A stretch of 59,685 nt of DNA, filler included, from Sluysia triapertura (lineage: Eukaryota), in NCBI GenBank assembly GCA_046118255.1. It is 5 parts of 5 records of this genome, joined end to end, with 100 filler letters (N's around TTAATTAATTAA, not from the genome) between each part and the next. Parts side by side here need not be neighbours in the genome. Positions count along the whole stretch, not along the records: positions 11,272 to 23,229 come from JBJNIA010152716.1; 4 more parts are not named here. The stretch is one strand, 5' to 3'. Each line of letters starts with the position of its first letter. Position 1 is the first letter of the stretch. Below are positions 4,241-23,229 of the stretch, in pieces. Made by a program: the position numbers and the translations under genes. The notes beneath the pieces were generated by a model. It did no database searches. It was not told the origin of the DNA and was given only the letters and a program-made list of their open reading frames with translations.

Positions 4241-5262
4241 CAAATAAATTAAAATTGGTCACGGAGACAAAATAACCCGCAATAAAATGATGACGACAAC
4301 GATATCAAAAATGACAGTTATAATAATAATAATTATAATAATTAAAAAACATAAATTCTTTAATTTTTAAAACACAACACGATGTTTCCTTTAATTTAAA
4401 TATCATTTCTCGACATATAATAAATAAAATTGCCTAAATAATATTATTTGTATCTATGTTATTTGACATTTTTCTAAATAAATTTTGCAATACAAGTTTT
4501 GAATCTTGCTACTTTTGAAAAAGAATTTGTCGAGTAATTACTAAGTTGTGAATTACTAAGCTGATAAGAAAATGTTTGGAGGAAACGATTGATAACTGAA
4601 ATGTTTAAGAAATATTATTTTGATTACAATGCATAAAAATGGTTTCGAAGTGTTAATTTAATGTTTTAAATAATATTAGGGATTGAATGGTGAGGATTAT
4701 GAATTTGAAATGTTTTAAATTAATTTGAAGATAACTGTTCATTAATTTAGGATGTGATTGTGGTTCTAATGTTATAAAATCCTTTATACATATTTTAGAA
4801 GAGTTGTTAGATATAGATTGATAATTTTAAATGAATGTTTAAATAAACATTGATGGCTTTGCGAATCATTATGATTTGGATATTGTAAGCTTGTGAATTG
4901 AGATGTTTTAGATAAACTGTAAATTTTAAATTGATGGTTTTAAATGTAATTGTAATTTGATATTATGAATTATGAGTTGAAATGTTTTAAGTAAAATTTA
5001 ATGTGCGTTAATAGTATGGACGTGAATGAAATTTTAATGTTATGTTTTGAGAAATTTGTAATAAGGTTTTATTGAAGGTAAAGAAGATAAAATATGAAAA
5101 GATTTAGATGTATGAGTATTTAAAATGATATTGAGTTTTATGTTTGAAATGTTTGATGGTATTAAGCGTTGTAAAATGTTATGAAGAGTGACTTTGTTAT
5201 GTCAGAGAAAAAAAAATAAAATTTGTTAAAAGTTATAGATTGGCCACCACATTTATTACCCA

Positions 5263-5600
5263 ATGAATGACTTAAATGATGAAGATTTTATAACATATTT
5301 ACAAAGAAACAATTTAATATTGAGTGAAGTAAAATGAGATGATTGCACCTTGGAAATGCACCTTAAGCCAACACATGGAAACATGGATAAGTGTAATTGG
5401 TGATGTATGATTGTGCATTGTCAGAAATGTAAAAAGACAAACACCTTTTTTGAAGGATTTAAAATGCCTATCAAAAAAATCTTGTTAGAGATCTGTTGTT
5501 ATGCTTCCATTAGCATCTTTTCATGTATCTCTTTATCTTTTATTAGCTCTTTGAAAAAGAAATGAATGAATATTATGAAAGAAGTTAACTCAGATGAATT
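5263..5600 (+). mobile_element. Merlin (IS1595/ISXO2-like) transposase N-terminal zinc-finger region, pseudogenised
   Basis: MNDLNDEDFITYLQRNNLILSEVK*DDCTLEMHLKPTHGNMDKCNW*CMIVHCQKCKKTNTFFEGFKMPIKKIL fits the Merlin pattern L...L....CxxC...M.L....D...WRC...C......TFFE..K(L/M). Confidence 0.65.
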
Positions 5601-7529
5601 AAAGTTAAAAATCGCAATGAGGACACTTTCTCTTGTTGCTATAAGTACAAGCCCATGCAATGGTTATGTTGAACAAAGGTTACGGATCGAACAAATGAAC
5701 CCTTTTAAAATATAACGTTTGAAGTTGTGCCACCAACTTAATAAAAATCATAGCACAACTATAAAAAATATTTCATAAATAAAATAAGCACCTTTTTAAT
5801 AACAAAATGTAACATGAACAATTCTAACTAAATTTTAATTCTTTATATCAAAAATGCAATATTATTAATATTTTTTTAACACGTCGCTGTTATTTAATAT
5901 CTGCTATTTTGCGATTTTGATAGCAGTCTGCTAACGTTATTTTTAATTAACAGCTAAAAAACAGCAGAATACCAAATAGCATAACATCTCTAGTGCACAT
6001 GTATAATTGCTCTATGAATCTGTAAGTATATTTGCTTTGAAATTTTATTCTTGATGATTGTTCTACATCAAGAACGTAAATTATGGAATTCGATGATGGA
6101 ATTACTGGAATTGGTAAAAAAATAACAAAAAATATTCAAAGAAAAAACAAAACTTTGTTTGTAAAATCTAACAATTTTAAAATTTTTAGCACCCACAAAT
6201 TATTATCACGCGTCCCATAGTGGATATTTCTTAAAGTTGGATTTTTTTGTCAACTTGATTGTCGTAATGTGAGTCAGACAGAGTCTGAATATTAATATTC
6301 AAATTCTTAAAATGAACATCAACTTGGAACGGATATCAAATTTATATAAAACATATTTTCAAATAAGTTACATTTTACATTTTTTTAATAAATCAGAAAT
6401 ATTTATATCCATAATTTTACAAAGATCTTGGAGGCGTTTTATTTTCTCCAAGGGCACACCTAAATATAGAATATTATCATTTTTGATTTGATTTGGATGA
6501 AGGTTATTTATCTTGAAGTTTATTTTGAAATGTTTTCATAAAAGAGAGTTTTTTAATAATTTCCGACCTTTGTATTTACCGCTCTTGATAATAATAATAA
6601 AAAAATATCATTGTTTATTTTAATAAAATAAAATAAAAAACACCTAAATACAAAGGAATATTCATTATTATATTTGTATGTAATGACTCGATGTATCTCT
6701 TGATGTGGCGATTAATTAGTAGTGGATTGAGATAAACAAAGTAAATGTAATTTATAATGAGTAATTATTTAACACATTTTACCAAATATTAATTGTATTA
6801 TAAAATCTGCTTGTTTTAAAATCGATGAAAATGTAGTTCGACACACAAAAATTATTGAAACGATTATTAATAAAAAAGCAGATAGAAAAAAAATTAATTA
6901 CGCCAAGCTGATTTAATGGAATGATTCCATATTTAAAAATCAATGATGAATAAAACTATATTTTAAATTGTGTTAATGTGAAATCAATCAATAAATTTTC
7001 AAACTGGTGTGTGTAATACATACATGGAATTACTCATTAGTCTCCATTTAATAAGCACAATATCGCATTGATTGTGCTGAAAAAAAACATTTTTTAAAAA
7101 ATGTAATAAAAAAGTAGTATGAAAAAGCAATTTAAAACAAGAAAAAATAAAACAAAGTTGTAGATTATTGTAAATGAGAGATTCTGTTATGCATGTATTA
7201 AAAGATGAAGAATTAGAAGTTTACTTAAAAACTAATAATCTGCCACATTGAATTGGTGTTTAACTATTATTAAAGAAAGATAAAGAAAATTTCAATGTTT
7301 TGAATCTTAAAATAAATTTAAAAATAAGCTAAATTAAATTAACAAATGACAAATAGTTAATTTTATATACAAATAAAATTTTTTAATGATATTTTTATTG
7401 TTCTATTTTATATTTAATTCCATATTACGTATAAAAACTATGTTTAATTTTATTACCAATAAAATTTTTATGACTAGAATTTCTCTTGTTATAAATAGAC
7501 AGAAAACATTGGTAAGCAAGTCATGATTA

Positions 7530-8245
7530 CTTGTTCGCGAACTACTTGAATTGACTTAACAATATTGGAATAATTGTTTTCGCCATTCGGGATTAATTGC
7601 TTTCTCCTGTCTTCAGAGTTATTTTTTATATCGATTGGATATTCATTAACTGGAACAATATTTATATTTGACTATTCGAAACATTCGAAGCAATCAATGT
7701 CGAAGTCGTAAGTTTATTTGTTATAGGATTTTCCATTCAATTAGTACAGGGTTAAAATTTTACTCAAATTCTCTATTATTTTCAGCTAAAAATAATTCCT
7801 CGCTTATAATTTGTTTAAAATCAAATTGTAAATTAAGGAAATAACCTTTAAATCATCACTACATAAAATTAATTTACACATTGAGTTTAATTTTAGTATA
7901 AAAAGTTTAGCTTCATTTTTATTTGTATTTATTTCATAGAAGGGATAATTGTAAAGTTATTAAGAATTCACATAATTCCATATTGACACAAAGATTAAGA
8001 GAAAATTTTCTCCTTATCCAATCTTTCATTCTAAAAACAATTGTGCCTTCCGTAGGATATAAATGTCAGACTACAGGCGAACCTGTAAGTTATTAAGTTC
8101 ATATTTGTTGAAATAAAAGAAAGAAAATTTCAGCAGAATATATTCTATAAGAGTTTAAGAAAATATATAGTCAAATTAATACCAGTTGTACGAAATAATA
8201 ATGCATATTTAATAAAAGCTGGTCATAAATCACTTTAGAACGAAG
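7530..8245 (+). pseudogene. Possible decayed multi-exon gene (includes Ig-like ..YKCQTTGEP)
   Basis: A run of AG...GTAAGT-bounded segments. 7940-8084 is open and ends YKCQTTGEP|gtaagt. Neighbouring segments contain stops. Confidence 0.3.
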
Positions 8246-8346
8246 GTAATGAATTATTTATTGATGAAAATTTTTCTCCAAAATACAAGATATATATAAT
8301 CGTAAAACACAAAAAAATTAAGTAGTTAACCTCTATGTATGTATGT

Positions 8347-8960
8347 ATGTATGCCGATGATGTGAAAAATATATACTGAATTTGATATCAAAATAACATA
8401 GAAAATAATGTTCAAAGAACAGAAGAACTAGTATCTGAATTAATAAATTGGTTTAGAAATAAATATTTGAAAATCAATGAAGAAAAGTCAGAATTTATAA
8501 TTTTCAGTAATAAAATTAGCCACAATACTAAAATAAACGAAATAAAGTTAAATTGTAGATGGTAAGGTACTGAAAGCGAAACTAAAAGTTGAAATATTTA
8601 AGCTGTTATAAGGATTCCAAATGAATATGGAAGAAAATATTAATTGAATTGTTAAAAAGTGTAAATATCAATTAAAGAAAATATCAAATATTCGAAAATA
8701 TATTAATAAAGAAATAGCCAAACTAATTTTAATAATGGTATATTGTACTAAATTGCATAAAGAACAGTGTAAAAACTACAATTAATAATAAATCAATCAG
8801 CAAGACTAATTTTCAAGTCACAAAGAAGTTACACTGATTACCAAAAAAAAGGAAAGAGTAGAATTCAAAATCATGACAATAATTTTCAAATGCGGAAATT
8901 CTGAATACCTCTTAAAAATAGTAAAATTTCCAAACCCAAAATGAGTATACTGAATCCAGA
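8347..8960 (+). mobile_element. L2/CR1-group non-LTR retrotransposon RT 3' fragment (5'-truncated, decayed)
   Basis: MYADDVK (YADD at 8350-8361)...ELINWFRNKYLKINEEKSEFIIF...IVKKCKYQLKKISNIRKYI...KLQLIINQSARLIF...RVEFKIMTIIFKC, the typical C-terminal half of an L2 RT. Confidence 0.85.
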
Positions 8961-9837
8961 TTGATTGTAAGATAGGTGGTAGGCTATACATCGTTTATGT
9001 TTCAAAAATAAACAACCAACTACTAGATGATTATAAAGGTAACGTTTTTTCTGCTTCAGAAATATTGTAGTAAATGATTTATTTCAAGCAATTTGAGTAC
9101 TGATTTTCCAGTAGATATTAGTGAAATATAAATTAATAGATTATTATTAATTATTATTAGTAGAAAGAAATCACACCATCCCTCTAGAGAGGAGTTGGAT
9201 TAGAGTTCTGATTGGTTAGAGTGAATATAACATTAAATTTGGATTTGGTGTTCATTAATTGGAAAAGGATTTATACGATGCTTATTCTATTTGTACATAT
9301 GTGGTGATTCAAAACCCTAATACGTTCCTTTAAACACAAATTCACATTTAATTATTCACAGTCTTGTCTTTATTTTCACGCTTCCACACATTCATATAAT
9401 TGGAAACTTTCAACAACTCTTCTCTACAATAAAAATCAAATTAATTATTAAAATAAAATATTATTAACTATTGCAATTAAATTACTAAATATTATAATAG
9501 TGTTCAATATCTCATTTCCTCTCACAATTTCTATTTATATAATTGAATTAATATTTTAATCATTACCATCAATATTATTTTATTAAATATTTAATTATTT
9601 TTTATTTTTCGTTATTTTTATCATTTTTATTTTTTTTTCCTTAAATTTTCATAGATTTTTTCTCTATTTTAAATTCGTTATTGAAATTTTTTTGTGCCAG
9701 CTCTCGAAGATTATATTAATTTAGATTCAAATATTGTTGAATATCAAGGATAAAGATATTGATGTTTTAGAAATGAGTGTTGTTAAACATAAAACTAAAG
9801 GTTTAGGAAAAAATTTAGATCTATATGATAATTTTAA

Positions 9838-10204
9838 CCCTTTAAGTACGAGTAACATCAATAAGTGTTGTTTATGCTAGCGTTTGGATATATCAGTTGT
9901 ATACAGTATGATAGAATATTTTAGATTTGTTTGTATCATGTCTATTCCGTACTTAGAATTACGGAAGTCCTAAATAATTTACTAGTCTCATTGCTTCATT
10001 AATTTCATTCAGATTTCTATATTTTTCCAAGTGAGTCATTATCGTTATATCAACTTCTCGCTCTGATGATTCAGACAGTGATGTAAAAGAATACTTGAGT
10101 GAAATAGAAAGTAGTAATAGTAGTGATACCATCAATGAAATTTCACGACGGATTTTTTGCGTTCTGCGAATACGATATTGCGAAATAAACTAGTACAAAA
10201 AGGG
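9838..10204 (+). mobile_element. Non-autonomous piggyBac-type element (367 bp) with TTAA target-site duplication
   Basis: TTAA|CCCTTTAAGTACGAGT ... ACTAGTACAAAAAGGG|TTAA (TIR 13/16). An internal acidic stretch SDDSDSDVKEYLSEIESSNSSD resembles a piggyBac transposase N-terminus. Confidence 0.75.
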
Positions 10205-10719
10205 TTAATAAAGATTTAAGTGTTCCGAATCAAAAAGGTGAAAAGTGTGTGTGTGTTTTATATTTTGAAAGTATTAAATCTAAATATGTATTTGTTCAAG
10301 AAGTAAATAGTGTAAAATTCAAAGATATGTCTACTTTCGAATTAAGTAACATCAAGTCCAGCCAACTTTAAGGCGAAGTCAGAAAGTTTGGTAGAAGACA
10401 ATGAAGATGATTGAGTAAGTTTTGATAATAATAATAATAATAGAAAAATTTTTAAGTGATTGATTATAAGCTTTGTAAGGCAGGTAACCTTTCTGAACTT
10501 TGTAGTATACAAGTTACATCTTAATTTATTAATTCATCCAATTCCTGTTTTAATAAATGTATGTTATATTCATCTAAATTATGAAATAATCTAGGTAAAT
10601 TCGCACAAATTATTCTACTTAAATTACATTTATTAAAAGATCTTTGTCATGATCTTTGACAAGTTTAGTAGCTATGTTTTTTTACACAAATAACATGATT
10701 TTGCTTTATTCAACTGAAA

Positions 10720-10960
10720 TTGTTCGTAATTAGTTGACTTCGTTTCTTTTACATGTTGAACAATTTATTCAAATTTATTTAAATAACTTACTACACATTT
10801 ATCACCAACAAAACTGTAGTATTCCGTTTTTTTGGTCTGCTAATAATAAAGTTTTCGTTTGGCTGGAAGTAATACAGATTCAGTAGTTGCAAAACTAACA
10901 AATAATGGTGATACTGATTTATAGTGACAAATAAAGTCACATTTATTATTCGTTAAGATT
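10720..10960 (-). mobile_element. Possible hAT (Charlie/Buster-like) transposase C-terminal remnant
   Basis: LFVSFATT...QTKKRN resembles the hAT dimerisation motif L.PFATTYLCE.GFS...KTK.R. Heavily decayed. Confidence 0.35.
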
Positions 10961-11171
10961 TTTTCTACACAACTTAATGTGTTTATTAGATGAGATATTT
11001 CTTCTAAATACTCTTAGACACTTTGTACACAACTTACAACTAATTCTTAAAAAGTTCTTCATGTCTACATTAAGAAGTATATTTAAGTCCTTTATAGCTA
11101 TATAATGGAATATAATTTCGTCTTTCAGTAATAATAAATTAATAATTGTTTTACTATTGAACTTATTTAGC

Positions 11172-11271
11172 NNNNNNNNNNNNNNNNNNNNNNNNNNNNN
11201 NNNNNNNNNNNNNNNTTAATTAATTAANNNNNNNNNNNNNNNNNNNNNNNNNNNNNNNNNNNNNNNNNNNN
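11172..11271. other. Artificial scaffold-joining spacer
   Basis: N44-TTAATTAATTAA-N44, a six-frame stop linker. Confidence 0.95.
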
Positions 11272-12452
11272 GTAGTTACAAGTTTTATAAAGAAAGTAGA
11301 ATTGAAGGATATATAGTGCAGACTTTTATAATAAAGATATAATCGAATTTAGATAAAGATTGAAGACCAAGACAGATTTTCACATTGGTGTATAAGTTGT
11401 AAAATAATACAAATCCTATAAAAATATTTATTACACTTATATTTGGTAAGTTTTCATTTAATTCACATTGCATTATTTCATTTAAGGAACATTCTTTAGT
11501 TGAAAAGGATACATACTAATGTTAATGATAATTTGAGTTGATTTTACGGAAATTGCGTTTCAATACAATTACAATTTTAAACTTCAATTTTTAGAACGTA
11601 GAATTATAAATTATTTATAAATTATAAATTATAGCTTATAAATTATTTATGCATAATTGTAATTATTTGACTATAATTCAATAAGATTCACATTTAAATG
11701 GTCTTTTTAATGTTAGATTATTATTAGACTAAATATAAATTAAAATTATAAAGAAAATCAATAAATTGTTTAACAAACAAGGATTTATGTGGAAATTTAT
11801 TTTTATTATATTTATGTTCCATTCTTGTTATAGTAAGTGTTTATTTTAAAATAAAATATAATTTTCAAAACTAAAATTTTCTAAATAAATATATCGTATT
11901 AAAATATTAACAAATCGATATAAATGTAGATTTAATAAAATAAGTTGTTATAAATGAATCCGTTTTTTAAAGTCTTAATCGAAATATTAGCATTCAATAG
12001 GTATTTTTTCTTGTACGACGTATGTTCCGTACACCTTTGCTATGGCGCTCAAAATTATGAAACTTATGACCAATCGTAGGAAATTATTTTTCATTTCAAT
12101 AGAATTTCATTAAGAAAAAATAAAATTAATTTACCCAATTGGGTTTTGAATCATCAGATACCAGAAATTTAAAATTTATTCTGAAGTAATATTAATGAGA
12201 AATGAAAAGCTTCCATACCAGCAAACCACGAAAATCAAAGGGTAATCAAAATTTCTTTATATATGTATCTAACGACATAAAATAAACTTTTATGGGAACA
12301 TTATCAAATAAAATATTGTGTTTCAATTTCATCTCTTTAGATTAAATTTCTTTAAATGTATTTATTGTTTAGCAACCATAAAAAAATTAAACTATTTTAT
12401 CGTATGATAATTAAATATAAAATTTATTTTTATGTTTAACATAATGAAACAG

Positions 12453-13158
12453 GTGCATAAGGCATGAAATATACTATCATTTAGGTAACAATAATAATGG
12501 ATTTTCGTGGTACAGAAATGATAAATATAATAATACATTTGTAATTAGTGGTATTTCTGCAACTTTTTATTGCAAGGAACATAATAAAATTTTCAAAGAA
12601 AAATGTAAATGGACAGATAACAGCAATAGATATACATCAGAATTTATCACGTATGGCCAAGGTTTGGATAAACATAATGGGCATCCTTATTGCTTTATAA
12701 AATTTGAAGCTAGTTCGAATCCTGGAGATTACAATATTTCATGTGTTAAAAATACCTTAACATCTATAAATCTTACAATTACAAGTGTTAGCAACATATC
12801 TACAATTAAAGTCACTTCCGAGGAAAAATCAAACGATTCTCTGTTAATAATTAATTTGGCCTCACAAATTTTTAAGTGTACCTCAAACAGTAAAAGATTA
12901 AATAAAGCATTTTCATTTTATTGGGCTTATGTAAATGAACAATTTAAATACTACAGTAATATTAAAATAGATTTTCTAAATGTTGAAGAAAATGCTAAAC
13001 CAGGAAAATATTCAGCTTTATGTTATGTGTATCTACTTAATTACAATTTATCGAAGCTGTTTGAATTTCATGTTATTACGTATACATCAACTGCTGTAGT
13101 TGGAAATACTTTTCTCAACATATTACTTGTTACTCAAGCATGTCATTATTTGGTGTAA
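12453..13158 (+). CDS. Exon of a cell-surface protein with two Ig-like domains (5' exon not resolved)
   Basis: The frame is open from 12448, with an acceptor aaacag at 12452. It has paired Cys/Trp motifs (FYC..CKW..PGDYNISC; FKC..FSFYW..PGKYSALCYV), several N-glycosylation sequons and a hydrophobic C-terminus. Confidence 0.55.
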
Positions 13159-13640
13159 CTTTAGTAATATGTTTGATATATTCTATGAATTTTGGATATA
13201 CTTTGGCGGCATTAAGTAATTTAGATGAAAGAGTAAAATGCTTACATAAAGCATGTTGTGACATCGATGTAAATATCACAAAGGCAATGGAAATGAAAGC
13301 CACATCTCTCTATGCTAGTGTAACAGCAACATTTACTATATTTGGAACAATAAGTGCTTTTTATCTGGTATAATGAGTGATTATTTTGGACGAAAAAAGA
13401 GTTTAATAATCAGTAATTTTATTGGAGTTATTGGTGGATCATTTGCAGTTTTAAGTTTTGTTAAAATGAATGTAATGTTTTTGTACATAAGTCGTTCTAT
13501 ATTATGTATAAATGCTGGATTGACAAGTGTTATAACACCAATATTTTTGGCAGAAATTCCTCCAACGTTAATTCGTGGTACAATTACAGCATGTCATCAA
13601 TTATCAATTACATTTGGTATTTTTCTTGTCTATTTAACAT
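13140..13640 (+). pseudogene. Sugar porter (SLC2/GLUT-like, MFS) N-terminal half, frameshifted and truncated
   Basis: Motifs NFGY, SDYFGRKKSL, ISR...INAGL, P.FLAEIPP..IRG...HQLSITFGI. One extra T in the T5 run at 13358-13362 restores AFLSGIMSDYFGRK. Similarity stops after about TM5. Confidence 0.85.
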
Positions 13641-13659
13641 TTTATTTTCCGAAAACTAA

Positions 13660-13825
13660 AAAATGTGTATTTTATGACCTCGTTTTAACCATGGCTGGTG
13701 ATTCTTTCGATGGAAATGTGGACGATGCAGAAAAAGGAGAAAGAAAAGAAGCTATAAGTTTTGTTGTTCGAAGTATGTGATTTATGTTAAATGTTAAAAA
13801 CTTTAATTATTTATTGTTCATTTTG
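13660..13825 (-). mobile_element. Possible LINE ORF2 (APE endonuclease) start remnant
   Basis: MNNK*LKFLTFNIN resembles the APE N-terminal L.I.T(F/W)NIN motif. It abuts the truncated sugar porter. Confidence 0.3.
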
Positions 13826-14923
13826 TTAATATTACAAACTTTATATCTATTAGATTTATACATAAATTTGATATTAATAAATCTCGTGGACTACTTAGTT
13901 GTTTTGATTATTTGTTTGTTTATGATTGTTTTGGGCCTTAAGACCTTTTTGTTAAAATTTAAATTAAGATTACTTAATTATTTCGTTGTAATTAAATTTT
14001 TCTTAAAGTTGAATATTTTTAAAAATAAAATTAAAATTAAAAAATGTAGATTGATGCGGCCCTCCACACTTTAAGGTTCTTTTCGAGGGTTCCAGCAATT
14101 TTCAAATTCACACTTCAATCAACTATATCATGTCCCGCGTCTACGATTAGAGGGAACGATTTTCCATCTTCAAAAAACCAATTCGTTCGAAAGGAAAGAC
14201 AATTGGAGATCACCAGCATTCATTATTAATTAATTCCTAAGTTTGTTCTAAATAGTTTGTAAACTCACATTGAGCTAAAATCTGCACTTAAACTATTACT
14301 TTTCACGGTTGGTCATTAAGGCCAGTCATAAAATCAAACTAAAATATAAAATCCTAAACCTTTAGTTGGCCCTTAAGGTCAATTATAAAGTAGATATTGT
14401 AGGGTAGAGTCTTTTGGCTAAACCCTAATTATAATTTAAATATCATCCTTATTATAATTTTGTCTAATTTGGTGTTCTTAATATTCATAATTGCCTATTT
14501 TATTAATTTAAAACAATTTTATTTTATTTTTTTGTGTAATAAAAATATGAGAAAAGTATTGAGTTCCTTTTATTATAGTATAGACTTAATTTGAGCTTAC
14601 GGTTATTTAACTTTAGTAATAATTCGTAATTAATATATTCTTCGCATCAAAAATTACATTGATTTTGATATTTTTTCATTAAATTTTAATAAGAATTATA
14701 AAATTCTACGATCATTATATTAGGATTTGGAGATAAAAAAACGTTACATTTTTTATACCATCGTTAATTATCTGATTTTTCATAAATTAGCGTTGGTCTT
14801 GATTATTTTTTAAGCTAGTTAGATTCAGTTGATATAAACTACGATTTTTGCCCATTATTGTTGAGTTAAGGCAAAGAAATTTTTTGTACGATTAATTTTG
14901 ATAATTGTTTTTTCACTTAATTT

Positions 14924-15017
14924 TACAGGTACGCCATTATTAAGTCGTGTACTGTAAACGAACTCAGAATAATAATTTATTTTGCTATAGGATAGGTTTT
15001 TAGATTAAGAAAAACAC
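14924..15017 (+). repeat. Interspersed repeat (DNA-transposon-like end), copy 1
   Basis: TTACAG.TA.GCC...TAAGTCGTGTACTGTA...TTTATTTTGC..TAG is shared with 35012-35102. Confidence 0.65.
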
Positions 15018-15839
15018 CCAGCATATTGAATGCCAAGCACTGTTCGGTGACATGACAAATTGCCACGTGGTGATATGTTTATGTAGGAGATTTCTTGTTG
15101 AAGGTATGATTTAATTAATTTCTCTTATATTTTTTACTGTCATGCACATATGAATAAATCATTGAGGCATGTAATGTGTTGCAGGAAGAAAAAACATGTA
15201 CCTATTCCATTAATTTAATAAAAACCATAAGTATACAGTTCAGCTGGATCATAATTTATATCGTCATTTCAATTTGGTGATGGCCAAAAGCCAGAAAGAT
15301 CTACGTAAGACAAAAAGAAACCTAGCAATAAGTAAAGTTCCTTTAATGACATTAGAAAATGTTAATATTGATAAATTTTATGTATGGCAAAATATAAAAA
15401 TTAATAATGATATTGCCGTCCTTATACAATAAGATGTTTCGAATCATTGTAAATACAGGAATTACCTTTTATAAGAACTGCTGGTCACTTGATCGACAAT
15501 TAACAATCACAATACTAGTTTGTATTATTGGATACAATTCGCGCTTTGTATAGCACTGTTCAACCTATTACTCATCTTACTCTTATACATCCTGTAAATA
15601 ATAATTTGTCACCATAAAATAATTTAGTAAAGTAGTTAAACCTTATTTATTTATTTATAAGTAGCTTTTTAGGATAATATAGGTAAAGTCCACTGATCCC
15701 ATCTTCGCTGGGTAGTTACGTAAAGTTAAAATAATAAGTTTTAGATTAGTAAAATAAGTTTTGCTTTGAATTATCCTTTTAGCTTCAATTACAAGTTTTA
15801 ATAAAATGATTTGCTATATTTTAGAGAATCTTTAGTTAA

Positions 15840-15990
15840 GTGTTCACCTTAAACAGTTGACACTATTAAACATCCATTTTGTCTTCTTCAGAATAAAAGT
15901 CATAGATTGTAATCTTTTCTTCAAATGTTCTTTCAGAATTTCTTTTAAATTCCAACTGACCTTGATACCATCCATGGACCGTATCGTCTT
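15840..15990 (-). mobile_element. Possible second gag remnant
   Basis: DTVHGWYQGQLEFKRNSERTFEEKITIYDFYSEEDKMDV* is weakly gag-like (W..FE..Y..EEDK). Confidence 0.25.
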
Positions 15991-16732
15991 ATCATTCACT
16001 TACATTTACTCTTTAACAGTGCAAAGTCTTTAGGTAATTACACAGAATGCCCTACTCGTTAAGCAAACCCTTTTATTAAAATTATTAAATATAAATTTTG
16101 ATATTGATACACTCATTTTATGATCTAATTTAATATGTATGTTGTGTCATGTTGCTTACTCTAATCATTTTAAGAATTTATGCTCACATTTTATTATTGT
16201 GCGAAATAACCACTCGTGATTAGCTTTGGAGACAATGTAGAGACCGATTTATATTAACACGAATATTAATCAACGAACATCTAAATTACTGGAATTCCTG
16301 AAACTTATTTTCGTTTAATTTCAGGAAAATAATTAGTTTGTTCAAAAAAACTATAGGTTTCAAGATTAATACATAAATCAGTATTATTTTCGAAAATCAA
16401 ACTTTATAATTAACGCTCTTTATAATTTCGTTGATGAAATAATTAATATATAAAACTTTCAAAAAATATTACGCTAAAGTAATTTGAATAAAATACCTTT
16501 TATAAGCCGCAAATTAATATTGTGCGAAATAATGTTAACCTTATTTGGCTAACAAAGATTCAGTACATTTAGCAACTTGTTAATAGAGTTAAAATATAAA
16601 CTAAAACCTTTTCTTGTTTTCATTAATGATTCCATACATAGCAAAAAATTTAAACATTTAAACTGCATAAACATGAAAAGATAGTATTAGTATATCAATT
16701 AAACATTTTACAATATTACATTACATATAAAA

Positions 16733-17125
16733 TTATTCTCCAAAAAATCGAAAAGATGAAGATAATAATTTCCATTTAGCATCATCATCCTTCTTAGCTA
16801 ATAATGTATCATTAAATAACTTAGTTTTTTGACCGTCATAAACAATTTTACCGGTTACAAAAATTGAAACTGACTTAAATTGACTGGAAATAATAGGATT
16901 AATTGGTTGTGCATTCAAAGATAATATTGTTGTTTTTGAACTTGGTAAACTATCGTAAAATTTTTGTACATCTTGACATTGAACTACATTACCATTCCAA
17001 TTCAATGTTGCTCCTTCAGCAAAATAAGTTACCATATTTGCACGAGTCTGATCATAGTCTTTATAATACGCTGTAGTTAATTTTTCAGCAACTTCAGCTG
17101 CAATTTCCCAATCAGCATCTTCCAT
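16733..17125 (-). CDS. NXT1: NTF2-related export protein (p15), intronless
   Basis: Intact 130-aa ORF with the NXT motifs AE..T.AYY...D, ATLNWNGN.V, FYDSLPSS, L.AQP, V.G.I.YDG.K...FN and WK..S..FRF. Confidence 0.93.
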   Translation of the reverse strand: MEDADWEIAAEVAEKLTTAYYKDYDQTRANMVTYFAEGATLNWNGNVVQCQDVQKFYDSLPSSKTTILSLNAQPINPIISSQFKSVSIFVTGKIVYDGQKTKLFNDTLLAKKDDDAKWKLLSSSFRFFGE

Positions 17126-17474
17126 TATAAATAAATTTAATGTAATTCTAAGAACCCTGTTTTAAATATTGATTATTTAAACAAATATGTATATATATAT
17201 TATACGGTCATAAAAAAATTTTATCAATCAAATTTATATTTTATAATGAAAGTTTATACACATTCACGCTTTATCAAAAATAAAATGATATCAAAATATA
17301 TTAAAGTAATAATTCACATGTACTTAAACAAATTATTTCTTAACATTATATAGATATTTGAATAAAGTTTCTTCTACTGTTTATTACTAATTAATTGAAA
17401 CATTATGAAAGTAATTTTACTTTTATTTATGTATCTGAAAAATTTCTAAGTGTAATTTTTTATTATTTATTTTA

Positions 17475-18113
17475 ATGACAGAAATTGATTTAAGTGACAT
17501 TAAAGTCGAATTAAAAAATATCGAAAGTTTAAAGACTGATGATTGCTGTGAATTAACTAATTTACTGAATCCGACTTTGAAGTGTATTCAGTTGGCAAAT
17601 TCCCAATTAAATCTTCCAAACGCAGAGCTAATTGTAATATTGTGCAATTCACGATTTATTGAGCTTTATCATAAATTATCACAAGAATATATTAAGTCAA
17701 GTCGAGGTATCGCAGTTTGTCACAATTGTAATAAAACAATAGAAAAAGATTTGTATTATCATATAATTAAATCAGAATTCAGCCAACCATTACAGATAAA
17801 ATTCAAATCTAGTGATATTATATTGTTGTATTCATTTGGAATTTTCAATAAATTGTTGGAAAATGTATTTAATAAAACAGGAATAAATTGGGATAATGTT
17901 GAACGAATGCTTAATTCGACTACCAATTTAAATCCGAATTCTATAGAATTATTTCATTACATTCGTAAATCTAATGAACAGATAAAAACTCCTCATGAAA
18001 TTCAGAATCAAATATATGATCAAATTTTATCAAAATTAGATCGCATAGAGTCTCGATCGATTAAAATTGAAGAAAGGTTGAATAATTTTGATGTTTCTAA
18101 TTTAAATAAGTAA
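17475..18113 (+). CDS. Uncharacterised 212-aa protein (CxxC..H motif, C-terminal coiled coil)
   Basis: Long intact ATG-TAA ORF in very AT-rich DNA, with AATAAA about 20 nt downstream. Divergent from NXT1. Contains CHNC...LYYH and the heptad-like tail ILSKLDRIESRSIKIEERL. Confidence 0.7.
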   Translation: MTEIDLSDIKVELKNIESLKTDDCCELTNLLNPTLKCIQLANSQLNLPNAELIVILCNSRFIELYHKLSQEYIKSSRGIAVCHNCNKTIEKDLYYHIIKSEFSQPLQIKFKSSDIILLYSFGIFNKLLENVFNKTGINWDNVERMLNSTTNLNPNSIELFHYIRKSNEQIKTPHEIQNQIYDQILSKLDRIESRSIKIEERLNNFDVSNLNK

Positions 18114-18619
18114 TTTTAATGAATTTATAGAACAATAAATACTTGAATGCAAATATTTTTCGTGTTAAGTTTGTGAACCTTTTAGACAATGTTTTTAAGT
18201 GCATTTTATATATTAAGATACAACGCTTATTTTTGTGCAATACATTTAATTCTTATATTTGATGCAGTATTTATCAGAATTTTGTATTAAGCTTCAATTT
18301 AATTGATTTAATATAATAAATTTCATTTTTAATACCTCTATTAAATAAACAGAATTTTCTTCGAACGATAAAGGTTGTAGTTGTAATTTAATTTTAAAGT
18401 TTGATCTTATGATAAAATGATATTATCCTCGAATTAAAGTAAATTAATTAATGGCAACTGAAATAATTATGATAGTCAACTGAAAATAGGAAGTACTGAC
18501 CAAGTATTTTCTTTTCGAAATATCATTTAAAATTAAAGGGTTGTAATGTTAAACTAAAAATAGTATCTGTATTTTTATCCCTTCGCTTTTGACTTTTAGC
18601 AAGCTGAATTATGAATTAT

Positions 18620-18644
18620 GACCTGATTGGTTGGCACCCTGTAA
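18620..18644 (-). repeat. DNA-transposon terminal sequence with a related copy at ~54484-54508
   Basis: Reverse complement TACAGGGTGCCAACCAATCAGGTC versus TATAGGGATGCCAACCATTAAGGTC. A second TACAGGGTGG start lies at ~18702. Confidence 0.45.
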
Positions 18645-18959
18645 TATTTTACAATTATATGCAAACAATCATGCATGGGTCACTGGCCACTTTGCAAGTA
18701 ATACAGGGTGGTTTTTCGAATTTTAAATGAAACTTATTAATGTCGAGGGTCTATATTGACTTTTAAAAGAAATACTAAAGGGTTTATGAACTTTTTATTA
18801 CAAGAACTTCAAACATTATTTTAGGACAAGTAAAAGTGGAGTGGTAAAGTTCTAAGAAGCACGTCGGCGTAGATAACGTGAAAATTAGTTATTTTAATTA
18901 ATCTTTATAATTTAAAATTAAAGTTAAATATAATAATAATATTATATATTTCTGAAACA

Positions 18960-19460
18960 GAAACAACTTTGCCTTTTCCTTAAATATTTCATAATCTTCC
19001 AGTAATTTGACATTCTCTAGTAGTACTGGTTGTGTATTTTTGAAACATAAACGATATACAACCTATCACCTAGCTCTTATTATCACTGTGGATTCTGTAT
19101 AGATTATTATTGTCTCAATGAAATATTATTCATCTTAGTTTCCAAATTTTTTACCATTTATAAAAGATATTCAGGACTTCCGTGTAATGTAAACATTTGT
19201 AAATTATTGTCATGGTTTTGAATTCTATTCTTGCTTTTATTGGCAACCAATAAGTTGTTACATGAGATCTTCTTCCCACTTGGAGAATTAGTCTTGCTGC
19301 TTGATTAATTGTTCATTGTAATTTTTTCTATCTGAAATTGAGTACAATAAATCATTGTTAAATCTATGTTGCTAGTTATCAATGAATGAACAATAAGTTT
19401 AACTCTAGAATGTCATCGAATAAATATTAGTTTCTGACTGATATTGTTATTATTATGTAA
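18960..19460 (-). mobile_element. L2-type LINE RT 3' fragment, same family as 8347-8960
   Basis: INQAARLILQVGRRSHVTTYWLPIKARIEFKTMTIIYKC. Direct nucleotide similarity to ~8790-8950. Confidence 0.85.
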
Positions 19461-19729
19461 GTGTTATATATAAATGAACAGAGGATTTATATTTCTTTTT
19501 TAGCTTTTAGTATGCGATATTTAAATGGTTCTATACAGTTTCCTCATTCTGAAACGACCTTAATATCGATTGTACAAATATTATTTTATTCTGTAAATGA
19601 CAAACAATGTGGAGTAGAAGTCGAGTATCAACGCGTCCTTTTGCCTGTAGATTTGATAAGTACTAAATTGAAGAAAAGAACTCGCAAGTACTTTGTATAA
19701 GATATTGTATAGGATATTACAATTATCCT

Positions 19730-20206
19730 AACATTTAAAAATGTTCCAGGGACGATAAGATGCTCCAAAAAGCACAAGAAAATATATTTTCTTTGGTGGT
19801 TCTTCAAAAATGTGGCTGAAAGAAGAAAACATCAATAGGAAATTAAACTTTCTACGATGAATCGTAAAGCTACCAGTATGACATTGTAGAAGCAATTAGA
19901 GACTTGCGGAATTCACGTTAGTGCCGAAACTGTCAGAAGGAGACTTGTAGATAATGGTTTGAGAGCGAGACGACCCAGAAGAATGATCAGTAAAACGTTG
20001 GCATGGGATAAGCAACGCCAACATTTAACTGGGGGCGACTGGAGTCACGAATCGTTCTTTCAAGTATTGGATGACAAGACCACCTTTATAAGGAGACCTA
20101 ATGAGGATGATTGTGTCATAGAAGCTACGAAACATCCAACTTTTGATTAATGGTTGAATTTTATCACAGAAATAGTCTTTCTTCTAATAATTTGGCCACT
20201 TCTGTA
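19730..20206 (+). mobile_element. Tc1-family element: decayed N-terminal/central transposase plus right TIR
   Basis: QLETCGIHVSAETVRRRLVDNGLRARRPR...LAWDKQRQHLTGGDW..ESFF...FIRRPNE.DCVIEATKHP. Ends CTAATAATTTGGCCACTTCTG|TA. Confidence 0.85.
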
Positions 20207-20304
20207 ATTACTAGTTAAACCCTTGGTGCTTAAACCTATAGTTTCGATACAAGCCTAAAGTGCAATTTAGAATAGTCATAGTATAACTGACTATAAAAAA
20301 CAAA

Positions 20305-20339
20305 ATTGTTAGCTGATAGCTCAGTTGTCAGATGATCGA
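20305..20339 (+). repeat. Degenerate 5' fragment of the tRNA-Ala-derived element
   Basis: ATTGTTAG-CTGATAGCTCAGTTGTCAGATGATCGA aligns with ATTGTTAGACGGGGCTGATAGCTCAGTGGCAGAGCATCGA (22303-22342) after a 6-nt deletion. Confidence 0.7.
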
Positions 20340-21142
20340 ACTACACATTTTTATTATTTCAAGATAAATTCACACACATTTTGTCATAAATAATCATTTA
20401 CATGTATAAAAATAAAACACGAGTTTACTCGTGGTTGGCAATGGGAATGCAACAGGACTCGATATCCTTTTTGTTATTTATAAAAAAACAAATCATGAAT
20501 CACTCAAATAGATAAAAATATAAAAATACCGAAAAAACGGGACGATTACTTTGCAGACGATTACTTAGATTCTATTTCGTCTCCGAGATAACGGCATCAT
20601 GTAATATTGAACAATTTGACTCTGAGTTTATCTGCAATATCTCTCTCACCAGTAAGCAGTGTAATTTTGTAGAGTCAGATGTAGTACCTGTCAATAAATT
20701 ATTAGTTCGAAAATATACATAACAAATTAATAAATAAAGTAGAATTTTATAAAAACAAGTTTATTTATAGTTTTTTAAAAAGTTTTTAACCTTATACATT
20801 CGTGGTTGGGTTAAGGGATACAATGTTGAACTGCGTGCGTAATTGATGCCTTTCTGTGTTAGATAATTAGGAAATGATAAAGTAGAAAAACATACAAAAT
20901 AACAATAATATAACTTACGAAGATGCAATTAATTACGTAAAATTCAGTAAATATAGTAGTCTACTAACTCAACTGCAAGTTTCATGTCAAGGTTCAGAAA
21001 ACAAACTAACTAAACAAATAGAGAGTTCTGTTTAACGAAAACACGACAACTGTTTAAGAATTTCATTTTCATATTTGATAACACAAATTAATAGCGCGCT
21101 TCCCTTTTTCGTGGTGCATTCAATAATCAAAATTAACCATTT

Positions 21143-22683
21143 TCATTTGACATTTTCTGTTGGCTGTCGAGGATACTTCAAATGTTTCAATTGTTCATAA
21201 GACAAAGGTACAAATCCTGGTTCATTCAACGATTGATAGATTTTAATTATAATAATTATGAGGATTATTAAGGCAAGTAATCCCAGGACGCCCAGTATAA
21301 GAAACACAATACCGATGATTGCCTTCCATCTGTAAAAATAATTACAACACGATGATAATAATAATAATAATAATATAATGTAAAGTATCATGCTCATTTT
21401 AATTCTAAAATCGTGTTAATAAATATCATTCAAAAATTAGTACCATTGAGATCATAATACTTTATATTAAATTAAAGTGAGATTACATAGAGGTAATGAT
21501 AAGTCGTTTGAAGCCAACAAATCAAGTATTTATAAATTATTAAGTAAACAAAATGAAAATCATTTTAAAACTGATAAAATTACGTCAAATGACTTTAAAA
21601 TTTTGTGTATCGAAAGTTTAAAATATACGAAATGGCATTAATAGTTCAAATATTAAATTAGAAATGCAAAAATAGAACATAAACAAATTTTAATTAAAGG
21701 AAATTAATGCGGATGATTTAAAGCAAATTATATCGGAAATTAAAAAAACAAGTTCTATTGACTCAATACCAAACAAACTTATCAAAAAATTCAATTTTAT
21801 TGAAAATTATTAATAATTCATTATATAGTCTAAAATTCCCTTCAAGTGGAAAAGTATCCGTTATAGTACCTCATCTGAAACATGGTGATCCATTGCATTT
21901 AAATAATTTCAGACCCGTATTGTATAATATAAATAATATAAATTCAAAATTTAGTAACAAATAACAATCAATATTAAATTGAAATTTTAAAATCATTTTA
22001 AAGTGAGCTCGTGTAGAGGCAACAAAGTTATTAAAATTTATAAACATCAAACCTTCTATCATTGTTAATAAAATCATTTTAAAATAATTAATAAAAATAA
22101 TATGAAATCAAATTTTAAGAGCTTAATATCCGATTAAAATTATATTAAAAGCAGTATTTAAAATATTAAATTAGGATTAAATAAAATCAATATATAATTA
22201 AAATTTAATAACATTATATTCGATCAAAATTAACTTTAATTTGTTGGGATAAAATGCCTAAAAAGTGCCAAGTAGTATAATTGAATATATTAAAAAAATG
22301 AGATTGTTAGACGGGGCTGATAGCTCAGTGGCAGAGCATCGACTGCGCAGACGATGCTCCCGGGTTCGATCCCCGGTCAGTCCATTTTACGAAGTCTAAC
22401 AAATTAAAGATTAGATAAAATAGACAAAAATTATATACAATTAATATTTAGAAGTATTTTGATCTACTAAAATCATTTTAAACTGAAATTATATAGAAAT
22501 AATATTAAATTAATAATGAGTTAATAATTAGTTAATGTAATTAATAATAATTACATTCTTCATACTATGTGATTTGAAAATAAAAATAAAAGAACTATCA
22601 TTTACATAACTCATTACAACAAAAAAGGTTTCTGTTGGACGGAGAAATTAATTGGAAATTGATGCAAGTTATCCATATCCGTG
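21143..22683 (-). CDS. Last two exons of a single-pass membrane protein (22618-22683, 21143-21329)
   Basis: A phase-2-compatible GT/AG junction gives TDMDNLHQFPINFSVQQKPFLL/WKAIIGIVFLILGVLGLLALIILIIIII-KIYQSLNEPGFVPLSYEQLKHLKYPRQPTENVK*. Upstream exons were not found in this scaffold. Confidence 0.6.
21690..22100 (+). mobile_element. L2/CR1-group LINE RT N-terminal fragment, decayed
   Basis: KEINADDLKQIISEIKKTSSIDSIPNKLIK / LLKIINNSLYSLKFPSSGKVSVIVPHLKHGDPLHLNNFRPV, the IN.SL..FP..WK...P..K....N(Y/F)RP motif. Confidence 0.8.
22305..22401 (+). mobile_element. 97-bp element with TG...CA inverted termini enclosing the tRNA-like cassette
   Basis: TGTTAGAC (22305-22312) and GTCTAACA (22394-22401). 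The non-tRNA flanks are conserved in the copies at 20305 and 48046. Confidence 0.7.
22314..22384 (+). tRNA. tRNA-Ala(CGC)-derived pseudo-tRNA with an aberrant anticodon loop
   Basis: Acceptor stem GGGCTGA/TCAGTCC with G3:U70 and A73. D-arm GCTC-AGTGGCA-GAGC. T-arm CCGGG-TTCGATC-CCCGG as in animal tRNA-Ala. Anticodon arm TCGAC-TGCGCA-GACGA (6-nt loop, G at 33, A:A mismatch). TTTT follows. Confidence 0.8.
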
Positions 22684-23229
22684 CTATTTAGAATAGAATT
22701 ATATTATCATTGATTCAAAGCAGAGAAGTTTCGACAAAACTACTATCAGAGATAGAGTTCATTTAAACACATTCATAAACTTATAAATTACACAATAATA
22801 ATAATATTATTATTATTAATAAAATAATATTAATAAATTAAAATTGTACAAAATATCTACTAATGTCAATAAAAATTAAAAAACTTATTTTAATGTATTT
22901 TACATATGTAATTAATTGATTTTTAATATTTAAATTTAATAATTGAAATTTTAAGTATATGAACAGCTGTCATTTTGAAATCAGAAAAATAGCATATAAA
23001 TCAAGCAAATTTTACAATAAAAACACAAAAACATTGTTTAAAATGTTACAGATTCTTAGTGAAACATTAATTTATCAATTGTAATCATTGACAGGTGCAC
23101 CCGCAGAGGGCCCAGGCCCGAGAGAGGTACGACGAAAATTTCTCCCAAAAAGTACAGTGCATTTTATGACGTCAAGCATCTAGTGTACTTTGTATTTTGT
23201 TTGGTTTTTATAATATGTGTACTTTTTGA

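Follow-up and report, generated by a model that had tools for sequence, protein, structure and literature searches.

Helenus elements are TRIMs that carry tRNA-derived sequence in their LTRs, and they have been grouped as 'TRIMp3' together with Cassandra and Ajax, both of which carry 5S sequence (Kojima 2024, PMC10886601). The LTRs of Helenus are 104-323 bp in length and keep boxes A and B (TRGCY..YGG and GGTTC), and most Helenus families are unable to encode a functional tRNA (PMC10886601). Their TSDs are 4 bp long in animal families and 5 bp long in fungal and plant families, solo LTRs are common, and the largest family that has been counted consists of 5,575 LTRs (PMC10886601). In the supplementary consensus sequences, TGT... 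opens the LTR and is followed by a leader and the tRNA-like part; a T-run often comes next, and a short tail leads to the final CA (PMC10886601).

Another example of this layout has been found in Sluysia triapertura (GenBank assembly GCA_046118255.1), in a window that comprises the whole stretch of DNA analysed, 59,685 nucleotides with filler. The unit in question lies in the 12-kb piece at positions 11272-23229 (JBJNIA010152716.1), and it is estimated, with a probability of roughly 60%, that 22242-22401 is the solo LTR of a non-autonomous, tRNA-Ala-carrying miniature LTR retrotransposon, that is, of a Helenus-type TRIM ('TRIMp3'). Within its 160 bp the order is TGTTGGG, a 72-nt leader, the tRNA-like part, TTTT, a 13-nt tail and CTAACA, and the features referred to below are as follows.

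22242-22401, + strand: LTR-like repeat unit, TGTTGGG...CTAACA, 160 bp, delimited by sequence, a scan of TG starts, contig depth and joints
22238-22241, + strand: left TSD copy, AATT, identical to 22402-22405
22402-22405, + strand: right TSD copy, AATT, identical to 22238-22241
22242-22313, + strand: leader, 72 nt, AT-rich; it can be aligned with copy B, 31 contigs have a loose-end consensus similar to it, and the depth places its edge near 22240
22305-22312, + strand: TGTTAGAC, internal arm of an 8-bp inverted repeat, inside the unit and not a terminus
22314-22384, + strand: tRNA-Ala-derived sequence, 71 nt, from Rfam tRNA, ARAGORN and the fold
22321-22331, + strand: A box TAGCTCAGTGG, read from the sequence, perfect
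22334-22359, + strand: near-palindrome in place of the anticodon stem-loop, a 26-nt self-inverted match at 92% and a hairpin in the fold
22363-22373, + strand: B box GGTTCGATCCC, read from the sequence, perfect
22385-22388, + strand: TTTT, resembling a Pol III terminator and immediately following the discriminator A
22389-22401, + strand: tail, 13 nt, ACGAAGTCTAACA, ending in CA, with the outer arm of the inverted repeat as its last 8 nt
22394-22401, + strand: GTCTAACA, outer arm of the 8-bp inverted repeat and 3' end of the unit
20241-20347, + strand: copy B, the degenerate 5' two-thirds of the 160-bp unit, from a local alignment with 22243-22349 (blastn E 6e-7)

The unit shares with Helenus its TG...CA ends, its leader, a tRNA-like part with A and B boxes, the T-run and the short tail; its 160 bp fall inside the range of 104-323 bp, its TSD is 4 bp as in the animal families, and its tRNA-like part is no credible tRNA. 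It differs from Helenus in the source of the tRNA, which is Ala-like with a palindromic anticodon arm, and in a copy number that exceeds the largest reported family about tenfold, and no full-length element (PBS, internal part and PPT) was seen in the 12-kb piece. The original prediction had not recognised this architecture as described, whereas TRIMs with a tRNA in the LTR have been published as 'Helenus' (TRIMp3), with a matching LTR layout (Kojima 2024, PMC10886601). The unit is probably a new, very abundant member of that architecture. When it was compared with the published Helenus consensus sequences, no similarity was found beyond the generic tRNA boxes, and the supplementary consensus sequences contained none of the words from its leader junction, anticodon region and tail. 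Apart from generic tRNA words, they have in common with it just tgttgggat and gtctaaca, short words from its ends that occur there in unrelated contexts. Helenus families are lineage-specific, and sequence similarity between families is not required. The plant TRIM Cassandra and the nemertean TRIM Ajax are similar to the unit in holding a Pol III small-RNA gene or promoter within the LTR of a miniature retrotransposon; in contrast to the unit, their LTRs carry 5S instead of a tRNA, and their TSDs are 5 bp (for Ajax, PMC10886601) as opposed to 4 bp.

All depths and joints given here are based on contigs of one public run, mapped on 20000-23229 at 80% likeness, for which the single-copy reference depth is ~17 (a depth of 15-18 for contigs matching perfectly in unique parts). 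On this scale, the summed depth of the bin 22268-22375 is 1.2 million, individual positions of the tRNA-like part reach ~0.8 million, and by contig depth the family has roughly 10^4-10^5 copies. The 12-kb piece itself holds one full and one partial copy, and the three copies in 60 kb that had been counted at first are a great understatement. The 3' edge of the unit was located where 231 contigs leave the window sequence, directly after 22401 and with a median of 255 nt onward; the consensus of these flanks reaches an agreement of 0.42, which is AT-rich background only, and therefore the unit has a sharp 3' end at ...GTCTAACA, with its copies situated at unrelated sites. The unit is dispersed and multi-copy, with unrelated flanks. 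It had been proposed to ask whether the likeness runs past the termini, as in a segmental duplication, and the divergence of the flanks directly behind 22401 in the 231 contigs ruled that candidate out.

While the 3' end was as predicted, the 5' end was not. A unit of 97 bp beginning at TGTTAGAC had been proposed, but copy similarity and contig depth reach 63 nt further upstream to 22242, giving a unit of 160 bp; thus, of the two proposed termini, GTCTAACA holds as the 3' end (231 contigs) and TGTTAGAC does not, being internal to the unit. Copy B can be aligned with the unit from 22243 on, including ~60 nt upstream of TGTTAGAC, and where 31 contigs fit only from 22296, the consensus that precedes this point still resembles the upstream sequence of the window. 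The mean depth is 210,000 in the bin 22160-22267 and 9,000 at position 22123, and with a family depth of ~0.8 million the former value means that ~26-28 nt of the bin belong to the unit, which places its edge near 22240. Unlike for the 3' end, no row of loose ends for a 5' end at 22242 was present among the matches listed (the best 6 of 1,273).

The original prediction had seen no clear TSD, and this changes once the 5' end is taken as 22242, where the unit is flanked by AATT on both sides. In a scan from 22180 to 22319, position 22242 was the sole TG start giving a 4-bp TSD with an end at 22401. Identity of 4-bp flanks at the spacing of the unit occurs by chance at 0.98% of positions in the 11272-23229 piece, and the TSD call comes from one copy (AATT/AATT) together with joints from three contigs only. 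These joints are of two independent types; in the first, 22230-22400 (171 nt) is skipped and 7 other letters are inserted, and in the second, 22242-22410 (169 nt) is skipped and 5 other letters are inserted, such that both show a net loss of 164 nt, which equals the 160-bp unit plus one copy of the 4-bp duplication. Since the sequence on either side of the unit is moderately repeated as well (depth 9,000 and 750), the two types are read as host-repeat paralogues that never got the insertion, i.e., as empty sites, with the shorter side of the joints measuring 26-30 nt at 80% likeness, a length at which joints can be spurious.

A retroviral-type integrase produces TG...CA ends whose inverted repeat is short and imperfect, together with a 4-bp duplication. 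Such ends are also those of Ginger-type DNA transposons and their MITEs, which have the pattern TGTNR...YNACA with 4-bp TSDs; the unit, which ends in TGTTG...TAACA between 4-bp TSDs, matches this pattern, having TGT...ACA termini as these elements do. The main rival to the LTR reading is a MITE, a non-autonomous cut-and-paste DNA element with a tRNA-derived gene in it by chance, whose movement would depend on a Ginger-type DDE transposase or another integrase-like one. MITEs typically reach very high copy numbers, the 12-kb piece showed no full-length TRIM, and in one contig a copy begins at the internal TGTTAGAC immediately behind another copy, as could happen with an alternative transposon end. 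However, MITEs normally have terminal inverted repeats of 10 bp or more, and those of Ginger-type elements are long, whereas the perfectly inverted termini of the 160-bp unit amount to 4 bp only (TGTT/AACA). When both ends were aligned, no terminal inverted repeat of ~10 bp or more was found, and the best local alignment of the first with the last 40 nt scored 7, against a null mean of 7.2. Moreover, the layout of the unit is that of published Helenus LTRs, and the position of its tRNA-like part and T4 relative to the ends is meaningless in a DNA-transposon model. The choice between a solo LTR and a MITE, which the original prediction had offered, has thus shifted toward the LTR, which is favoured by the TG...CA ends, the 4-bp TSD, conservation on both sides of the tRNA-like part and the lack of a SINE tail, while the MITE alternative is weakened and is now rather unlikely. 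As a separate observation, TAAAATG/CATTTTA is present in both ends of the unit (22242-22256 and 22383-22401) at slightly different distances from the termini, and is not significant in the end-to-end alignment.

The tRNA-like part was found where it had been predicted, between TGTTAGAC and GTCTAACA; Infernal matches it to the Rfam tRNA model at 22314-22384 (+) with 47.9 bits (gathering score 29, E 7e-8), and the two arms of the inverted repeat lie, again as predicted, upstream of the tRNA start (22305-22312) and beyond the TTTT that follows the discriminator A (22394-22401). Read by hand, it has an acceptor stem GGGCTGA/TCAGTCC with a G3:U70 pair and the discriminator A73, and the letters CGC are present in a loop. 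G3:U70 and A73 are the identity marks of alanine. Its TAGCTCAGTGG matches the A box consensus TRGCNNAGTGG as well as the TRGCY..YGG pattern kept in Helenus. On the same span ARAGORN reports 'tRNA-???' with a 4-base anticodon, Infernal pairs only 3 anticodon-stem positions around a 10-nt insert, and the MFE fold has acceptor and T arms along with a long hairpin where the anticodon arm is expected; a canonical 5-bp anticodon stem with a 7-nt loop was not found in 22314-22384 by any of the three. Because a near-palindromic hairpin replaces the anticodon arm, 22314-22384 is, as judged from its sequence, a tRNA-Ala-derived Pol III unit and no working tRNA.

These details also bear on another explanation, in which a plain tRNA-Ala gene or pseudogene, or else a segment duplicated locally, has an inverted repeat around it by chance. 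The Rfam score above the gathering score and the combination of G3:U70 with A73 are what such a gene would have, and an 8-bp inverted repeat around a 71-nt segment is met by chance at ~1% of positions in this AT-rich piece. A stronger point than the ~1% figure is that both arms are part of a hugely repeated unit; depth is ~800,000 as opposed to ~17 for single-copy sequence, flanks diverge after 22401 in 231 contigs, and a canonical anticodon stem-loop is lacking, all of which makes this explanation scarcely credible. The candidate of an ordinary tRNA gene was ruled out by the copy number and the broken anticodon arm. The piece 11272-23229 has ~25% G+C, and 22305-22401 forms a G+C-rich island within it.

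A type-2 Pol III promoter directs transcription from about +1 of the tRNA to TTTT. The leader and the tail would then lie outside the transcript, and yet the 72 nt that precede +1 and the 13 nt that follow T4 are both conserved at family depth. A Pol III transcript would be unable to carry these two parts, and an LTR with a U3-R-U5 structure would regenerate them. This is of importance for a further alternative, in which the unit is a tRNA-derived SINE or retroposon of an unusual kind that relies on a LINE for its movement. SINEs of the tRNA-derived type (SINE2) are like the unit in that they are short, have a Pol III promoter derived from a tRNA and reach very high copy numbers, and mobilization by a LINE would also be in keeping with the deeper 3' end of the family and with the high-copy LINE-like remnants nearby. 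In contrast, SINEs have their tRNA-related head first, a LINE-related or A-rich tail and TSDs of variable length, while the unit has its tRNA-like part at the 3' end and not at the 5' end, a conserved leader upstream of it, which over its 72 nt is as deep as the core, and TG...CA ends with a short 4-bp TSD. As the original prediction had noted, a poly-A or simple-repeat tail is absent; no A-rich, simple-repeat or LINE-derived tail was found at the end of the unit, which after 13 conserved nt past the terminator closes with ...TTTTACGAAGTCTAACA, and the flanks diverge at once. The 3' position of the tRNA-like part, the conserved leader and tail and the lack of any such tail therefore make a SINE distinctly improbable.

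The family is not uniform. The last 26 nt of the unit (22376-22401) are ~2.6 times as deep as the rest, and 255 contigs fit only from 22358 on, preceded by a diverged version of the anticodon region, which points to subfamilies or 5'-incomplete copies. Most copies differ from the one at 22242-22401 in three letters, having A at 22302, T at 22332 and G at 22357, and the T at 22332 produces the usual GGTA D-loop. In some contigs the leader continues through TGTTAGAC (22296-22312) and is then followed by AGGAAGAACAGCGAAT in place of the tRNA-like part; these may represent a tRNA-less variant of the unit, which would suit the proposed origin in which a tRNA-derived element was inserted into an older LTR. 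The second copy that had been predicted near 20305 was confirmed as copy B, ~2 kb upstream of the full unit, which shares the upstream TTGTTAG and more. Copy B extends from the leader into the tRNA-like part as far as the anticodon region and has no 3' part; it is without ACGGGG, has an 11-nt insertion in its leader and resembles the diverged anticodon-region version of the 255 contigs, and in one contig a leader of the B type is joined to an intact tRNA-like part.

Outside the genome, an exact scan with two family-specific words gave 0 matches for each in metagenome contigs, bacterial and archaeal genomes and viral contigs, and a word-based protein search found no homologues of a 44-aa ORF that by coincidence runs across the unit. 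A 16-mer taken from the unit was not found in the literature, nor did a search for literature on genomes rich in tRNA-Ala pseudogenes give anything useful.

Under the preferred reading as a Helenus-type solo LTR, the layout of the unit fits a clean U3-R-U5 structure in which R is the Pol III transcript. In the full-length element, transcription would start at the tRNA-like part of the 5' LTR, would sometimes have to read through the T4 of that LTR, and would end at the T4 of the 3' LTR, from which it would follow that the tRNA-like part is R, the 72-nt leader U3 and the 13-nt tail U5. An autonomous, probably Gypsy-type, element would supply reverse transcriptase and integrase, by which the element would be copied and inserted with a 4-bp staggered cut, and recombination between LTRs would leave solo LTRs such as 22242-22401. 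For the element, the tRNA-like part would serve as promoter, not as a decoding tRNA. Paired LTRs in direct orientation with PBS and PPT were not found in the 12-kb piece, and the flanks of the unit show neither PBS nor PPT, which agrees with a solo LTR. A contig in which the unit is followed by sequence like that from 21925 onward was considered as a candidate for an internal region and rejected, having no PBS or PPT and single-copy depth. Among the findings that stand against the LTR reading are a copy number that exceeds the largest published Helenus family ~tenfold and is more typical of SINEs and MITEs, the ~2.6-fold greater depth of the 3'-terminal stretch, and the lack of likeness to published Helenus consensus sequences beyond generic tRNA boxes.

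If the LTR reading is true, sequences that mimic tRNA-Ala and keep their Pol III boxes intact occur in this genome by the tens of thousands, such that tRNA gene prediction would be swamped by copies of the unit and potential binding sites for TFIIIC and Pol III would be scattered through genes and repeats. The Helenus/TRIMp3 group would be extended by a family ~ten times larger than any reported. Because the unit fits U3-R-U5 with R as the Pol III transcript, the proposed Pol III-driven LTR retrotransposition would be directly testable. A more far-reaching view, which is regarded as doubtful, is that the unit represents either no LTR but a miniature element of a new class, mobilised by an integrase or a DDE transposase, in which a Pol III gene travels within one 160-bp unit and 4-bp TSDs are made, or, if it is Helenus, the TRIM family with by far the greatest success on record (10^4-10^5 copies, ~1% of the genome), in a lineage from which no Helenus has been reported. 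To readings other than an LTR, a MITE, a SINE, or a tRNA gene or local duplication, only a small share of the probability is given.

Several other repeats and coding sequences were noted in the same piece. Directly upstream of copy B, at 19890-20147 (+), there is a Tc1/mariner-type transposase remnant with a match to HTH_Tnp_Tc3_2 (E 8e-7, just under the Pfam cut-off) and a contig depth of 5,000-10,000. The truncated copy B is followed at 20348-20755 by a repeat with a depth of 7,000-20,000 and several length variants around 20396-20489, for which a Pfam search gave no match. A stop-free stretch of 79 aa at 21722-21958 (+) has, by eye, a motif like that of the N-terminus of LINE reverse transcriptases (...GD....NFRP...); Pfam found nothing in this LINE-like remnant, and its contig depth of 70,000-325,000 marks it as another very abundant repeat.

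Among the coding sequences, an ORF of 130 aa at 16733-17125 (-) has an NTF2 domain (Pfam E 1.9e-10) and looks NXT1/p15-like, and an ORF of 212 aa at 17475-18113 (+) has a weak PAAT-like match. Neither of these two ORFs had a homologue in a word-based protein search, and the genome would seem to belong to a lineage that has been little sampled. Further upstream, at 13373-13780 (+), lies a sugar transporter exon-like ORF that matches Sugar_tr with an E of 3e-21.
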